A stretch of 64,000 nucleotides of DNA from the sequence record NC_010811.2. The stretch is one strand, 5' to 3'. The notes under the pieces were generated by a model. The model was not told the DNA's origin. It saw nothing but the letters and a program-made list of their open reading frames with translations, and made no database searches. Position 1 is the first letter of the stretch, and each line of letters opens with the position of its first letter. This document shows, piece by piece, positions 53,736 through 59,572 of this stretch. The translations under genes and the position numbers were made by a program.

Positions 53736-54489
53736 GGCATCGAAAGCCTCGGCCGCTTCCGACAGTGGCCAACAAAAGGTCATCAACCTGACCCGCATCA
53801 AACAGTGGTACATCCCAGCAGACAACGAGGCATATCTCACCCTGAAGAGGCACGGTGTGCCTCTGCTCAAGATCCATCAGAATTTCCTGCCCACGTTGCG
53901 TCTGCTCACGCAGAAGCACAATATCCGTGGGCGAGTCGTCGACTTCACCGACGAGATCCTGGATCCGTTCCTGGAGCGACTGGGCAACACGTGGAACACG
54001 AAATACGGCAAGGCCACCATCACCAACAAGGTCATGGTGTTCCAGGCTAAGGACGACAAGCTGGTCGAAGCGCGCGAGGCGGTACCCAAGTTGGAAGAGC
54101 GCCTGCGCCAATTCTTCGATCGCTGGGGCTTCAAGTTCCAGTGCGAGTTCTCCGAAGTCAAGAGCCGACTCAAGCTGCACGTCGAATACTGGTTCGACAA
54201 CAACAAGTCGCCGGTCATCCTCATGGACGAGCCGGAGGTCGAGCAACCGAAGGTCATGCTGAAGCTGGGCTTCACGCGGCTGGTCTTCGCCTTCGATCAA
54301 CACCAGAACCAGTTCGGCAAGGGTCCCGGCTATGTGCACCTCACCATCGAGGTGAGTCAAGGCGGGCGATGGGCACCGTTGCGCACCAGTCGCTGCACGT
54401 ACACCGAGTTGAGTTCGGTGCTGCCGCTGGTCACCGCACTGATGGACATCCCCAACAAGGACATTCATAATCTCGATAACCCCGCATGA
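53722..54489 (+). CDS. Hypothetical protein
   Basis: GTG start after GGAG. Confidence 0.7.
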   Translation: MKTRKASKASAASDSGQQKVINLTRIKQWYIPADNEAYLTLKRHGVPLLKIHQNFLPTLRLLTQKHNIRGRVVDFTDEILDPFLERLGNTWNTKYGKATITNKVMVFQAKDDKLVEAREAVPKLEERLRQFFDRWGFKFQCEFSEVKSRLKLHVEYWFDNNKSPVILMDEPEVEQPKVMLKLGFTRLVFAFDQHQNQFGKGPGYVHLTIEVSQGGRWAPLRTSRCTYTELSSVLPLVTALMDIPNKDIHNLDNPA

Positions 54490-55028
54490 AAAGGCTCACT
54501 CTTCCATCGCACGAGTATCTATCGCAGTGCTTCTCTTTCACTAAGAGCACGGGTTCTCTGCGATGGAAGAATCGTCCTCCGGAACACTTCCAGTCGGTTA
54601 CCCGCTGCCTCCAAGCGAATACACGTTACGCGGGCAAAGAGGCCGGGTGCCTCATGGTCGATGGACACATAGGTGTGCGTCTAGATGGAAAGCTGTATTA
54701 CGCACATCGCATTATCTGGATGCTCGTAACTGGAGTTGACCCCGGTATCTTGGAAGTCGACCACAAGAACATGGACAAGGCCGACAACCGATGGCGCAAC
54801 CTGCGATTAGCCACCCATGAGCAACAGAGCTATAATGTCCTTCGCCATTCCGGAAACACCTCTGGTGTAAAGGGTGTGAGTTTTAACAAACGCACCAGCA
54901 AGTGGATTGCATTAGTGCAGGGGCGTCGTAGGAAGATACGAAAGGAATTCGCCTTATTTGCTGAGGCCGTAGCTGCGGTTCGTGCCGCACGTAAGCAAGT
55001 TCATAAGCGATTCACCAATCACGGATAA
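54486..55028 (+). CDS. Free-standing HNH homing endonuclease with AP2-like DNA-binding domain
   Basis: YAHRIIW...VDHKNMDKADNRWRNLRLAT...NTSGVKGV...KW; AT-richer codon usage. Confidence 0.9.
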   Translation: MKRLTLPSHEYLSQCFSFTKSTGSLRWKNRPPEHFQSVTRCLQANTRYAGKEAGCLMVDGHIGVRLDGKLYYAHRIIWMLVTGVDPGILEVDHKNMDKADNRWRNLRLATHEQQSYNVLRHSGNTSGVKGVSFNKRTSKWIALVQGRRRKIRKEFALFAEAVAAVRAARKQVHKRFTNHG

Positions 55029-55039
55029 CTGAGCCAATC

Positions 55040-57688
55040 GTGACAACCAAGAAACAGACCAAGTACGATAGCACTAGCATCGAGACTCAACGCTTCCCTC
55101 ACAACGTCCGGGCGTCGCCAGCCATGTACATCGGCGGAGTCGATGCCTACGGCCTGTGGACTGTGACCAAGGAACTGCTGGACAACGGCGCCGACGAGTT
55201 CATGGCGCAACGCAACGACGCCGTGTTCCTGCACTTTGACGCTGATGGCAGCTACTGGGTCTGGGATCACGGGCACGGCATCCCACAGGGCGTCAAGACG
55301 TTCAAGCTGAATCTGAACGGCAAGGTGGTCACGCAGAAGATGCCGACCATGCAAGCGGTGTTCGGCGAGCTGCACACGTCGGGCAAATATCGCAGTGAGG
55401 CGTACGCAGTGTCCATCGGCAGTCACGGCGTCGGGTCCAAGGGCACCAACGCGACGGCCGAGTACTTCGATGTCTGGACGCTGTACGAAGGCCGCTGGAG
55501 CAGCATCAAGTTCAAGAAGGGTGAGCTGGCACAGCCGGTGAAGGAATGCTCGGCCCCCAAGCTGCCTACTGGCAAGCCGCTGAAGAAGGGCACGCTCATC
55601 CACTTCAAGCCGGACGCCAGCATCTTCAGCGTCAAGAGCTTCCCGCCGTCGATGGCTGTGGAATGGGCGACGGTCATGTCGTACATGAACCCCGGCCTGT
55701 CGATCCACCTGAGCAGCAAGAAGGGTGCGAAGACGTACCTCAGCAAGAAGGGGCCGCAGGAGTATATCGAGCATCGTCTGGCTGCGCTGAAGACGGAAGG
55801 CGAGCGTCAGATGTTCGTGCATCACGACGACCTGTCGGATGTGGTGTTGGCATTCACCAACTACGACGGTTGCGACATCCGCGGCATGACCAACTCCGTG
55901 ACCAATGGTCAAGGCGGCAAGCACGTGGACAGTGTGACGGGTGCCGTCTATGCTGGCCTCAAGCCGTGGATCAAGACCAAGAAGGTGAAGGAAGACGGCA
56001 AGGTGAAGGTGGTCCCTGCCTTCCGTGAGACCGACCTGAAGGAAGGGCTCGTTGGTCTGGTCAACGCCAAGCTGCACAAGGCCCAGTTCTCGTCGCAGGA
56101 CAAGGCACGACTCACAGACAACCGGCTGGGCAAGGACTACGAAGAGGCGATAACCAAGAAGTTCGTCGCCTTCTTCAAGGAGAACAAGGCGCTGGCCCAG
56201 CGTTTGTGTGATCGTGCCACCAAGCTCAACGAACTGAAGACCAAGTTCACGATGAGCAAGAAGGCAGCAGCTACGTTGAACGCTGTGAAGCGCAATGGGC
56301 TGCCCGCCAAGTACGCAGCGTTCAACTCGGACACGAAGGTTCACGATCGTGAGCTGTTCCTCGTTGAAGGCGACAGCGCAGGTGGTTCGCTGAAGGATGC
56401 GCGCTTGCCCTATCAGGCGGTCCTCCCACTCAAGGGTAAGGTGCTCAACGCACTGAAGGACAACAAGGGCAAGGCGCTGGAGTCGGATGAAATCATCAAC
56501 ATCCTGGCGGCTATCGGCTACGACACGAAGGCCGCTGACCCGCTGTCCAAGCTCACCGTGGGCAAGATCATCTGTCTGGCTGACCCGGACCCGGATGGTC
56601 CGTTCGTCGCAGACACGCAGGTGCGTTTCCGCTACAAGCGCACTGCGAATGACGGCCAGCCGCAACTCGCCACCATTGAATGCTTGGCGGAGATGGCGAA
56701 TACTCCTGGCCAAGAATTCGAGGTTCCGGTCTACGTGAACGGCAAGGAGCAGTGGGCACCGGCCACCGCGCAGTTGGAACGCAACGTGGACACGCTGGTG
56801 AGCATGGAGATCGGCGGTCACAAGTACAAGGTGAGCGAGGACCACAAGTTCCTGGTGATCCGTACGCCGTCCACGCGCAATCGTGAAGGGCTGACGTTCA
56901 GCGAGCATCTGTGCTTCATGCGTGCTGCCGACATGAACATCGGCGACCGTGTGTACGCGCCGCACATGGAGCAGGGGCGCCGCGACTACAACCGTCAGGA
57001 CAAGACGAGTGGCCACGGATTCATGGCTGTGAACAAGCTGCGAGTCCAGAAGCAGAGCGCTCCGGTCCCCGTCTACTGCTTGACGGTGCCGCGCCATCAT
57101 CACTTCCTGCTGCCGTCGGGTGTTGTGTCTAGCAACTGTCACATCAACAGCCTGCTCCTGGGTCTGTTCTACAAGTACCTGCCCGACCTGTTCGACAAGG
57201 GCATGGTGTACGTGAGCGCGGCCCCCGAGTTCTACTCGATCTACAAGGATCAGCTGGTGACCGGCGACACGCTGAGCGCAGTGCAGGTGAAGCTCAAGAA
57301 GCTGAAGGCTCCGACGTCCACCGCCATCCACCACTTGAAGGGGTGGGGCGAGGCCAGCGAGAACCTGATGCGTGTGCTGGCAGCAGACCCGGCAACTCGT
57401 CGCCTCATCAAGATCAAGGCCATCTCTCACGACGACAAGGTGGACTTCGTCAAGGTGATGAACGAGGACGTGGAGTACCGCCGTCGCATGCTAGGCTTGC
57501 CACAGAACGCGAAGGGCGACGAAGATGAGGCGCCGCCCGCCGCGAAGAAGGCACCGGCTAAGAAGGCGGCGCAGCCCAAGGCCATCCAGATGCGAGCCCG
57601 CGACGGACGTCCCCTGCGCGGCAAGATCATCGTGAAGCAGCCGCCCGTAAAGAAAACGGGTACCCGTCAACGTAAGGAGGCAGCATGA
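55040..57688 (+). CDS. gyrB: Type IIA topoisomerase large subunit (GyrB/ParE-like) with intein
   Basis: ELLDNGADE, DHGHGIP, HGVGSKGTNA, LFLVEGDSAGG, PLKGKVLN, DPDPDG|intein|CHI, KGWGE. Confidence 0.92.
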   Translation: MTTKKQTKYDSTSIETQRFPHNVRASPAMYIGGVDAYGLWTVTKELLDNGADEFMAQRNDAVFLHFDADGSYWVWDHGHGIPQGVKTFKLNLNGKVVTQKMPTMQAVFGELHTSGKYRSEAYAVSIGSHGVGSKGTNATAEYFDVWTLYEGRWSSIKFKKGELAQPVKECSAPKLPTGKPLKKGTLIHFKPDASIFSVKSFPPSMAVEWATVMSYMNPGLSIHLSSKKGAKTYLSKKGPQEYIEHRLAALKTEGERQMFVHHDDLSDVVLAFTNYDGCDIRGMTNSVTNGQGGKHVDSVTGAVYAGLKPWIKTKKVKEDGKVKVVPAFRETDLKEGLVGLVNAKLHKAQFSSQDKARLTDNRLGKDYEEAITKKFVAFFKENKALAQRLCDRATKLNELKTKFTMSKKAAATLNAVKRNGLPAKYAAFNSDTKVHDRELFLVEGDSAGGSLKDARLPYQAVLPLKGKVLNALKDNKGKALESDEIINILAAIGYDTKAADPLSKLTVGKIICLADPDPDGPFVADTQVRFRYKRTANDGQPQLATIECLAEMANTPGQEFEVPVYVNGKEQWAPATAQLERNVDTLVSMEIGGHKYKVSEDHKFLVIRTPSTRNREGLTFSEHLCFMRAADMNIGDRVYAPHMEQGRRDYNRQDKTSGHGFMAVNKLRVQKQSAPVPVYCLTVPRHHHFLLPSGVVSSNCHINSLLLGLFYKYLPDLFDKGMVYVSAAPEFYSIYKDQLVTGDTLSAVQVKLKKLKAPTSTAIHHLKGWGEASENLMRVLAADPATRRLIKIKAISHDDKVDFVKVMNEDVEYRRRMLGLPQNAKGDEDEAPPAAKKAPAKKAAQPKAIQMRARDGRPLRGKIIVKQPPVKKTGTRQRKEAA
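56600..57136 (+). mobile_element. 179-aa mini-intein, Pro1, class-3-like
   Basis: PFVADT (block A), VSEDHKF (block B), VYCLTV (block F with Cys), GVVSSN|C (block G). Confidence 0.88.
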
Positions 57689-58038
57689 TCGTCATGGAGT
57701 ATTCACCCGTTCTGGGCCAAGCGATCCCGGACGCCGCGCTTCTCAACCACGCGGACGAATTGATCGGCATCCACAACGAAGGGCGGACTGCGACCAGTTC
57801 AGTGTCCACATACCAAGCCATTACCGCACTGCGCCAGCGAGTGGCTGAGGGTCAGGTGTCCTACAGCGACGTGTTCGTGGTGTACGAGGGACGCTGGTTG
57901 CAGCTCAATCAGTTTGCAGGCTGGGCGCAGGATAATCCGGAAGGGTTTGGTGACCTGCACGCACGCATGCTGTCGCGCTTGGTCACCCTTGGAAACGCGC
58001 GCCGTCGCAAACTCAACACGAAGGAGTGTGATGACTAA
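57685..58038 (+). CDS. DUF3696-like small protein between topoisomerase subunits
   Basis: ITALRQRVAEG...DVFVVY...NPEGFGD. Confidence 0.5.
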   Translation: MIVMEYSPVLGQAIPDAALLNHADELIGIHNEGRTATSSVSTYQAITALRQRVAEGQVSYSDVFVVYEGRWLQLNQFAGWAQDNPEGFGDLHARMLSRLVTLGNARRRKLNTKECDD

Positions 58039-59572
58039 GAAGGCTAAGAAGCCTGTCGGCAGTCTGGTACCCGCCGCTGACCGACACGTAGTTGACGAGT
58101 CGTTGAAGGATTTCGGTCGTCGTAACATGACGATCTACGGCACCACGGTGAACTTGGACCGCTCGGTTCCAGATCTGTACGATGGGTTGAAGCCGGTCCA
58201 GCGTCGCATTCTGTGGTCGGCGTCGCAGGTGTGCCGCACGCAGTTCGAGAAGAGCGCACGGCTTACCGGTCACTGCATGGGTGCCTATCACCCGCACGGC
58301 AACAGCGCCATCTACTCGGCTGCTGTCAACATGGTGCAGCATCCGAGTCCAACGCTTCTGGGCAAGGGCAACTTCGGTTCGATGACGGACGGCGCGGCTG
58401 CTGAGCGTTACACCAACGTTCGCCTGTCGCACTACGGCCAGACATTCTTCGACAGCGACTACATCAACGCTGAGACCACGTCGTTCGTTCCCAACTACGA
58501 CGACAAGGATGTGGAACCCGTCACGCTGCCTGCGCAATTGCCGAACGTGTTGCTCAACGGCGGCGAAGGCATCGGCGTTGGCATCACCACCAAGCTGCCG
58601 ACGTTCACACCGGAGTCGGTGCTGGAAGTACTGAACCGCATGTTCAAGGGCGAGAAGCTTCAGGCCGTGGACTTTGCCAAGACGCTGAAGTACCATCACA
58701 AGTGGGGCGGTCAGCTCGTGCGGTCCAAGGAGAACCAAGCGCAGTGGAAGCAGATGTTCGTGGGCAGCATGGCCAACCTCCAGTTCGAGGCAGTGTTGGA
58801 CTTGGATCGTGACCACAAGCGCATGACCATCAGTTCGTGGCCTCCAGGTACAAACCTGGAAACCTTCATGAAGAAGGTGCGGGCAATGCCGGAGTGCCAC
58901 AAGTGCTTCAACTCCAAGGGCACGACCACGTATCAGATCGAGTGCAAGCCGGGCTTCAATTACGACCAGTTCGACAAGTTCGTCGAGAAGGTGCGCAAGG
59001 CCACGATGCAACGGCAGGCGTTCAAGATCAACGTGACGCGGCGTGAAGCAAAGACGGTGGACGGCGTCACCACGTTCAAGACTGAGTTCCTGGCGCTGTC
59101 GGTGCCGGACCTCATCTTGCAGTGGTGCCGCATGCGTGTGGCGCTGGAGCTCAAGTCGCTGGCGTATCGCATCAAGAAGCAGGAAGCGGCGATCGCCTAC
59201 TCCAAGCTGCTGATCTACGCAGTGGACAAGCTGGACCTGATCTTCAAGGCTCTGCGCCAGTCAGACCCAGATGCTTCGCTGCAGAAGCTGCTGAAGATCA
59301 CGGCAGAGCAGGCCAAGCAGATCTTGGACCTGCAAGTGCGCAAGCTGTCGAAGCTCGACCAGTCCAAGCTCAAGGGCACGCTGAAGACGCAGGAGCAGGA
59401 GCTCAAGCAACTCCAGACGTGGCAAGCCAAGCCCAAGGCCCAGGTGCTGCTGGATCTGGCGGCAGTGCAGCAGGCACTGGACAAGGATCGCAACTTCAAG
59501 CTCAAGGAAAGCACGCAGAAGCTGACCGTGTGTGATCTGAAAGGTGGGGCTACGGCCCACCCGCAACCCTAA
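58031..59572 (+). CDS. gyrA: Type IIA topoisomerase catalytic subunit (GyrA/ParC, T4 gp52-like)
   Basis: DGLKPVQRRIL, YHPHG, AAERYT catalytic Tyr; no C-terminal beta-pinwheel. Confidence 0.92.
   Translation: MTKKAKKPVGSLVPAADRHVVDESLKDFGRRNMTIYGTTVNLDRSVPDLYDGLKPVQRRILWSASQVCRTQFEKSARLTGHCMGAYHPHGNSAIYSAAVNMVQHPSPTLLGKGNFGSMTDGAAAERYTNVRLSHYGQTFFDSDYINAETTSFVPNYDDKDVEPVTLPAQLPNVLLNGGEGIGVGITTKLPTFTPESVLEVLNRMFKGEKLQAVDFAKTLKYHHKWGGQLVRSKENQAQWKQMFVGSMANLQFEAVLDLDRDHKRMTISSWPPGTNLETFMKKVRAMPECHKCFNSKGTTTYQIECKPGFNYDQFDKFVEKVRKATMQRQAFKINVTRREAKTVDGVTTFKTEFLALSVPDLILQWCRMRVALELKSLAYRIKKQEAAIAYSKLLIYAVDKLDLIFKALRQSDPDASLQKLLKITAEQAKQILDLQVRKLSKLDQSKLKGTLKTQEQELKQLQTWQAKPKAQVLLDLAAVQQALDKDRNFKLKESTQKLTVCDLKGGATAHPQP

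Follow-up and report, generated by a model that had tools for sequence, protein, structure and literature searches.

A mini-intein with class-3-type active-site residues splits the Toprim motif of the GyrB-like topoisomerase subunit of Ralstonia phage phiRSL1

Results

An insertion in the Toprim motif of a jumbo phage topoisomerase

The window analysed here, a stretch of 64,000 nucleotides from sequence record NC_010811.2, carries on its plus strand (55040..57688) a gyrB-like gene with 100% identity to ORF333 (gyrB) from the 231-kb jumbo phage phiRSL1 of Ralstonia, and it is the mini-intein within this gene that concerns us. By its translation and its match to PHROG 543 ('DNA topoisomerase II large subunit', E 6.6e-131), the gene encodes the large subunit of a DNA topoisomerase II; the precursor translates to 882 aa (97.8 kDa) and matches the Pfam families DNA_gyraseB, Toprim and DNA_gyraseB_C. 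The translation runs through KIICLADPDPDG, then 179 residues (537 nt, residues 521-699), then CHINSLLLGLFYKY. These 179 residues are flanked by ICLADPDPDG before and CHINSLL after, and the Toprim motif is thereby split as DxDxDG/xHI (here and below, the slash marks the point of insertion). Three segments result, all on the plus strand: an N-extein (55040..56599; aa 1-520) that ends in the Toprim acidic motif DPDPDG, with Toprim (PF01751) matched at aa 438-520; the mini-intein itself (56600..57136; 20.3 kDa), delimited by translation and supported by Pfam, NCBIfam, an AlphaFold2 model and fold matches; and a C-extein (57137..57685; aa 700-882) that starts with CHINSLL, the remainder of the Toprim motif. 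The intein is absent from the deposited annotation of ORF333.

The limits of both exteins are confirmed by alignment with Burkholderia phage BCSR5, the closest cultured relative without the insert (N-extein identity 51%), in which GyrB reads DPDPDG-CHINSLL without interruption and the alignment gap measures exactly 179 residues. Because the BCSR5 allele lacks precisely these residues at this place, we define the intein as Pro521-Asn699, with Cys700 as the +1 residue. An earlier note on this DNA, made from the letters alone (the original prediction), had described a 179-aa insert at 56600-57136 that starts with Pro, carries the Cys of VYCLTV at position 4 of block F (F:4) and ends in S-S-N followed by Cys+1; the translation confirms each of these details. 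It had also claimed that the insert has no endonuclease domain and, indeed, none was detected there with Pfam, PHROGs or NCBIfam. The ORF333 insert is the only one of its kind in the phiRSL1 genome, where no second intein-like match was found.

Inside the insert we find PFVADTQV at the start, KVSEDHKFLV, and PVPVYCLTVPRHHHFLLPSGVVSSN, after which the next residue is Cys. On the plus strand, these assign as follows. Block A (PFVADTQV; 56600..56623) has Pro1 where a Cys or Ser nucleophile is usual, and block B (KVSEDHKFLV; 56828..56857) provides Ser599 (B:7), His602 (B:10; codon 56843-56845), Lys603 (B:11) and Phe604 (B:12). Block F (PVYCLTVPRHHHFLLP; 57068..57115) holds the proposed first nucleophile, Cys680 (F:4; codon 57077-57079), in the context PVPVYCLTV, and block G (SGVVSSN/C; 57116..57139) comprises Ser697 (G:5), Ser698 (G:6), Asn699 (G:7; 57134-57136) and Cys700 (+1; 57137-57139), with Ser and not His as the penultimate residue. 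Cys680 aligns with the F:4 Asp of the Pyrococcus horikoshii (Pho) RadA intein, and its setting P-V-Y-C matches the P-V-K-C of MP-Be, the class 3 prototype.

The insert has the fold of an intein

We modelled the insert with AlphaFold2, together with six flanking residues on each side and from an alignment of 32 rows, and obtained a confident model (mean predicted local distance difference test score, pLDDT, 91.4; predicted template modelling score, pTM, 0.86). A Foldseek search with this model gave 54 matches among Protein Data Bank (PDB) entries at E<=0.001; the best was the Pho RadA intein (E 1.6e-9), and nearly all of the PDB matches listed are inteins, bacterial intein-like (BIL) domains or hedgehog domains, i.e. 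proteins of the Hedgehog/intein (HINT) fold. VIA-align superposes the model on the Pho RadA mini-intein with Z 17.1 and a root-mean-square deviation of 2.4 Å over 151 aligned residues. The fold does not discriminate between intein classes, with Z 15-17 for solved class 1 inteins vs. 14.2-14.5 for the class 3 inteins MchDnaB1, MsmDnaB1 and AceL NrdHF; the KlbA precursor gives Z 12.8.

The NCBIfam intein C-terminal model TIGR01443 matches the phiRSL1 insert at 24.2-27 bits (cut-off 15.6), Pfam Intein_splicing (PF14890) reaches 25.8 bits and stays under its gathering score of 35.8, and the NCBIfam model intein_Nterm (TIGR01445) has no match in the phiRSL1 insert, while it does match a relative with Cys1 (L013, described below). 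The missed PF14890 threshold and the missing TIGR01445 match both agree with an atypical N-terminal half of the phiRSL1 intein. The 179-residue insert is thus a genuine mini-intein splitting the Toprim motif: the original prediction of a mini-intein in the Toprim motif of topoisomerase II is upheld by the fold, by TIGR01443 and by the intein-free allele. Nor is the insert a product of chance, since the frame is open, the fold is HINT and over 28 related phage genes have kept the insert.

A family of mini-inteins conserved in jumbo phage GyrB proteins

A tblastn search against 50,697 phage records found only phiRSL1 and the Burkholderia phages BcepSauron and BcepSaruman, which carry the insert at 54% identity and whose topoisomerase genes are likewise deposited as plain gyrB/topoisomerase. 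A word search of 5.8 billion proteins added 28 further GyrB-like proteins with the insert, from long phage-like contigs; these metagenomic proteins come without host information. The family, which we call lineage a, comprises at least 28 jumbo-phage GyrB inteins, and 28 full inteins were compared for the conservation counts.

Ten positions are the same in 28/28 of them: Gly-1, Pro1, Phe2, Thr6, His B:10, Cys F:4, Ser G:5, Asn G:7, Cys+1 and His+2. Others vary within narrow limits, namely B:12 (Phe in 19, Trp in 9), B:7 (Ser in 21, Asp in 7) and G:6 (Ser in 24, Ala in 4). Mean pairwise identity is 55% for the intein and 61% for the extein, with a correlation between them (Spearman 0.51); the intein has therefore diverged in step with the gene that hosts it, under purifying selection. 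Such a pattern is expected of an old, fixed mini-intein that still needs to splice.

In some relatives (L011:6001-6228; P0013, P0023, P0026), a second intein lies upstream in the same GyrB, at the Toprim motif EGDSAGG/S, with canonical class 1 features, namely the block F sequence VYDLTV and the end HN/S; in these phages, two inteins of different type therefore share one Toprim domain. In P0027 (693 aa, 80 member sequences), unrelated sequence takes the place of the last ~25 residues of a lineage-a intein and of the entire C-extein; either the copy itself is frameshifted or broken, or the assembly has produced an artefact. The GyrB of L026 (IMGVR_UViG_3300045988_142247), at 1121 aa, has no intein at DxDxDG/AHI; the site stands at residue 993 and not at ~505, and the ~490 extra residues upstream are probably one or more other inteins.

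A sister lineage in which the first residue alternates

At the same GyrB site, a related phage contig (L013) carries an intein of 448 aa with Cys1 at its start, an HNH domain, the block F sequence FYCLEV and the end SSN/CHI. A search seeded with this intein yielded 18 GyrB inteins (P0031-P0048), here lineage b, most of them 420-460 aa long with a Pfam HNH_3 domain, alongside several minis of 162-221 aa. The two lineages are homologous in their splicing domain (hhalign Prob 99.1%, E 1.7e-18, 141 columns) and share the insertion site, the lack of a penultimate His and Phe or Trp at B:12. In all 18 members of lineage b, F:4 is Cys, G:5 is a Ser or a Thr, G:6 a Ser or a Gly, and the terminal Asn is present; the +1 residue is Cys except in two members with Ser (P0036, P0046).

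What sets lineage b apart from phiRSL1, besides the HNH_3 domain of most members, is its first residue, which is Cys (8 inteins), Pro (9) or Asp (1). Block B differs with it, positions B:10-12 being His-Pro-Phe in all Cys1 members and His-Lys-Phe or His-Lys-Trp with Pro1. Across both lineages, Cys F:4 is present in 46/46 inteins and position 1 is a non-nucleophile in 38/46. In a quick maximum-likelihood tree the Cys1 inteins do not form one clade, and the best tree needs several Cys1/Pro1 switches; a single Cys1 clade is not rejected by the approximately unbiased test (p 0.19). B:11 follows residue 1 in 3/3 independent contrasts, too few for significance (p 0.25, n=3). Judged from these sequences, at least one switch between Cys1 and Pro1 has occurred.

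Constraint on the +1 residue is confined to intein-bearing alleles

In nine intein-free alleles, the residue that follows DxDxDG, equivalent to +1, is Y, A, L, G, H, W or S (seven IMG/VR loci), C (BCSR5) or R (PhiXhv-16). In the intein-bearing alleles it is Cys or Ser in 46/46, and these also have the terminal Asn in 46/46; a Fisher test of +1 Cys/Ser with vs. without the intein gives p 1.8e-7, uncorrected for relatedness. The +1 residue is thus kept as a nucleophile in intein-bearing alleles alone, which argues for active splicing and is the footprint to be expected of selection for it. BCSR5 (L014), the closest cultured relative of the intein-bearing phages, is the sole intein-free allele with Cys at the +1-equivalent position, which is compatible with either a precise loss of the intein or an unoccupied homing site.

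Could the insert nonetheless be a degenerate HINT domain, a decayed intein that the Toprim surface tolerates and that either remains part of the mature topoisomerase or does no more than cleave? It does have neither an N-terminal nucleophile nor a penultimate His, it falls under the gathering score of Intein_splicing (25.8 vs. 35.8 bits) and, without an endonuclease, there is no selfish mobility to maintain it. However, the catalytic positions are all invariant across a family with a mean identity of only ~55%, and the motif that is split, DxDxDG/xHI, binds metal in an otherwise conserved enzyme. A dead, retained insertion is further disfavoured because the +1 residue is free in the host enzyme and fixed as Cys or Ser with the intein, and we regard this explanation as very improbable.

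Closest relatives among class 1 inteins

To place the family among known inteins, we located the MP-Be intein (Tori et al. 2010, PMC2807308) in gp10 (TerL) of mycobacteriophage Bethlehem, at aa 141-481, and find there its published Pro1, His65, Trp67, Cys320 and T-H-N/T. This MP-Be 'DnaB' intein (L018) thus sits in a gene annotated as terminase large subunit rather than in gp61 (273 aa), which bears the DnaB-like helicase annotation; the gp10 record carries no intein flag. MP-Be and the phiRSL1 intein have in common Pro1, His B:10, Cys F:4 within P-V-x-C, a terminal Asn and a phage host. They differ in the Trp-Cys-Thr (WCT) set that marks class 3 inteins, which is W-C-T in MP-Be and F-C-S in phiRSL1, in the penultimate residue (His vs. 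Ser), at +1 (Thr vs. Cys) and in length (341 vs. 179 aa).

Beyond these residues, the likeness is with class 1. The hidden Markov model (HMM) of the family has no match to the MP-Be intein even with all filters off, and hhalign gives the family Prob 1% to MP-Be vs. 96.8% (E 2e-10) to the intein of P0052, a textbook example of class 1 that occupies the same GyrB site and has Cys1, Asp F:4 and the end HN/S. When a profile of eight family sequences was searched against the PDB, its sole match was the Pho RadA intein, also of class 1 (E 0.0015). P0052 and the Pho RadA mini-intein (PDB 4E2U/2LQM) are thus closest by sequence and fold, and P0052 shares the insertion site; both differ from phiRSL1 in having Cys1, Asp F:4 and a penultimate His where phiRSL1 has Pro1, Cys F:4 and a penultimate Ser. 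Since the profile detects this class 1 intein at the same site and not MP-Be, separate descent is probable: judging by sequence, the lineage would work in a class-3-like manner and probably derives from class-1-type inteins resident at the GyrB site, and probably not from the canonical WCT class 3 clade. Loss of the HNH domain probably gave rise to the mini form.

The original prediction had spoken of a divergent class 3 intein and proposed an alignment with class 3 inteins as a check. The signature in that description holds (Pro1, Cys F:4, Phe for Trp, Ser for Thr and Ser for the penultimate His, with Cys F:4 in 46/46), but by sequence the family falls outside the canonical WCT clade, with no detectable kinship to the prototype MP-Be by either HMM or hhalign.

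A proposed class-3-type route through Cys680

How, then, would an intein that starts with Pro splice? We put at roughly three in four the probability that the phiRSL1 intein does so by a class-3-type route via Cys680; what the data show are the fold, the boundaries, the conservation pattern and the selection at +1. Class 1 is excluded because residue 1 is Pro521, and Pro in 28/28 of lineage a. Cys F:4 occupies the position of Asp in Pho RadA and P0052, and considering that residue 1 varies (Cys, Pro, Asp) and Cys F:4 never does, the simplest account is that splicing is initiated by the Cys at F:4. With His B:10 and the hydroxyl at G:5, this Cys reproduces the catalytic triad of class 3 inteins, Cys F:4 - His B:10 - Thr G:5 (PMC7664689).

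The constancy of F:4 also bears on a class-2-like alternative, whereby Cys700 would attack the Gly520-Pro521 bond directly, as in the Ala1 intein KlbA, and Cys680 would have a structural or activating role only, in the place of the F:4 Asp. Pro1 and Cys+1 are both invariant in lineage a, the family is nearer by sequence to class 1/2-type than to canonical class 3 inteins, and the KlbA precursor matches the fold (Z 12.8). On the other hand, such a route does not fit a Cys F:4 that is invariant in 46/46 inteins of both lineages, where the class 1 intein of P0052 carries Asp, and the +1 Ser of P0036 and P0046 would be a poor direct nucleophile for an amide. We consider direct attack by Cys700 improbable.

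The class-3-type route has to accommodate the departures of phiRSL1 from the WCT set: Phe604 stands at B:12 in place of Trp, and at G:5 Thr is replaced by Ser697 (Ser in 28/28), a conservative hydroxyl substitute. Each departure from the signature has an experimental precedent. The W67F mutant of MP-Be was half-spliced at 30 °C and rescued at 15 °C, and mutation of its penultimate His had little effect (PMC2807308); phage inteins frequently have another residue in place of this His (PMC5050341). AceL NrdHF, with an MCT triplet and without both assisting His, has nevertheless been proven to undergo rapid and efficient class 3 splicing (PMC7891396). This intein (PDB 6ZGQ; Z 14.2) resembles that of phiRSL1 in its deviant B:12, Met there and Phe here, and in lacking a penultimate His, and differs in being naturally split, in keeping Thr G:5 and in residing in another host gene. 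A further parallel is Bvi IcmO, also a mini-intein of Burkholderiales-associated mobile DNA with no N-terminal nucleophile, Cys F:4 and Cys+1; unlike phiRSL1, it is a canonical WCT intein, of 142 aa and in another host protein, and its mechanism is experimentally proven and not deduced. In Bvi IcmO, the Cys+1 that is present is unable to replace Cys F:4 (PMC5222942). The phiRSL1 intein also falls within the operational definition of class 3 used in a census of 1701 such inteins, i.e. no Cys at position 1 and a Cys at C2:4 (PMC7891396); among 1702 class 3 inteins tabulated there, FCS occurs once and WCS three times (PMC7891396 Table S1).

From this signature, together with published class 3 chemistry, we infer the following order of chemical steps. 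Once the HINT domain has folded, Cys680 (F:4) would be activated by His602 (B:10), with Ser697 and Phe604 taking the places of Thr and Trp, and would attack the Gly520-Pro521 bond to give an internal branched thioester. The N-extein would then be transferred to Cys700 (+1), and Asn699 would cyclise to release the 20-kDa intein; as the penultimate His is absent, the conserved block F His probably assists in this step. Finally, an S-to-N shift would create the Gly520-Cys peptide bond and a subunit predicted at 703 aa and 77.5 kDa, which would pair with ORF335. Splicing of the precursor would be needed to rebuild the Toprim sequence DPDPDG-CHI.

Several points weigh against this mechanism. The WCT signature is only partly present in phiRSL1 (F-C-S), the family profile misses both MP-Be and the solved class 3 inteins, and the nearest relatives are class 1. 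The Cys at +1 would also permit a class-2-type direct attack, to which, judging by sequence, we give little credence. Moreover, a WCT set engineered into the class 1 intein gp41-1 gave no splicing (PMC7664689), so that the signature alone is no guarantee of mechanism.

Genomic neighbourhood of the split gene

Downstream of the gyrB-like gene lies ORF335 (58028..59572, plus strand), by the phiRSL1 annotation the gyrA-like small subunit and the partner of the spliced GyrB-like subunit. Between the two is ORF334 (57685-58038 in the window, plus strand), which encodes 117 aa and has no Pfam match. The gyrB/gyrA-type genes are adjacent or overlapping in BcepSauron, BcepSaruman and BCSR5 and, because they adjoin in these phages, we take ORF334 to be another lineage-specific insertion, alongside the one found on the other side of gyrB.

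There, ORF332 (54486..55028, plus strand) lies upstream with a gap of 11 bp, and by its domain matches and gene-order comparison it is a free-standing homing-type endonuclease with HNH_3 and AP2 domains. BcepSauron has its homologue of ORF331 (38% identity) immediately next to gyrB, which identifies ORF332 as an insertion specific to phiRSL1. HNH-AP2 genes resembling ORF332 occur in ~2,900 phage records. A comparison of ORF332 with the HNH domain of the lineage-b inteins showed only the similarity of a generic HNH motif (31 aa, E 0.003), so we claim no specific kinship. Directly upstream of gyrB in BcepSaruman is an extra gene of 302 aa with weak helix-turn-helix matches (L003:1549-2457); the near-identical BcepSauron lacks this gene.

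Discussion

Inteins with class 3 chemistry are already known as a kind. What is new here is the family, its insertion site, the F/W-C-S signature combined with Cys+1, the class 1 affinities and the Cys1/Pro1 polymorphism. Our literature search found no published mention of an intein in phiRSL1, in BcepSauron and the Sarumanvirus phages or at the GyrB Toprim site, and no proteomic or biochemical splicing data for members of the family. As far as the text of Table S4 of the class 3 census (Hoffmann et al. 2020) is accessible, the accessions of the phiRSL1, BcepSauron and BcepSaruman GyrB proteins (BAG41779, YP_001950209, QBQ74549, QBX06583 and the forms that begin with YP_0099) are absent from it.

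Taken with the conservation of its catalytic positions, it seems likely that an active mini-intein has long been fixed in the GyrB-like subunit of phiRSL1-type and Sarumanvirus-type jumbo phages. Why would it be kept? One possibility, raised for redox in the original prediction, is that splicing is conditional: redox state or metals would act on the two catalytic cysteines, such that the topoisomerase would be released only under certain host conditions. Two catalytic thiols are needed (Cys680, Cys700), and class 3 mycobacterial DnaB inteins have been reported to respond to oxidative stress and zinc (PMC6195587, PMC7360933). However, the sequence data hold nothing that speaks to regulation, no cysteine besides the two catalytic ones is conserved (those at intein positions 28 and 105 of phiRSL1 are not shared by its relatives), and the difficulty of a precise deletion suffices to explain a fixed mini-intein. 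By analogy with the mycobacterial cases, conditional splicing may be entertained, but we think it unlikely.

The annotation of phiRSL1 is directly affected, in that its mature enzyme is predicted to have 703 aa and not 882 aa. Small class 3 inteins that accept Cys+1 and Gly-1 would also be of practical interest for protein ligation.

More broadly, the two lineages offer at least 46 natural members with class-3-type active-site residues and the F/W-C-S set, without a penultimate His and with class 1 inteins as their sequence kin, among which close relatives differ in having Cys or Pro at position 1. We tentatively raise the idea, at somewhat less than even odds, that the class 3 mechanism arose independently here, a few substitutions away from a class 1 ancestor, with Cys1 and Pro1 alternating on a constant Cys F:4 and with Pro or Lys at B:11 changing in step. 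Published engineering of a class 1 into a class 3 intein has failed; a few members of this natural set, along with point mutants, allow a direct test of how the class 3 mechanism originated. If the idea is true, members with both Cys1 and Cys F:4 may use either nucleophile, and the family would bear on the published claim that classes 1 and 3 are convergent and not easily interconverted.

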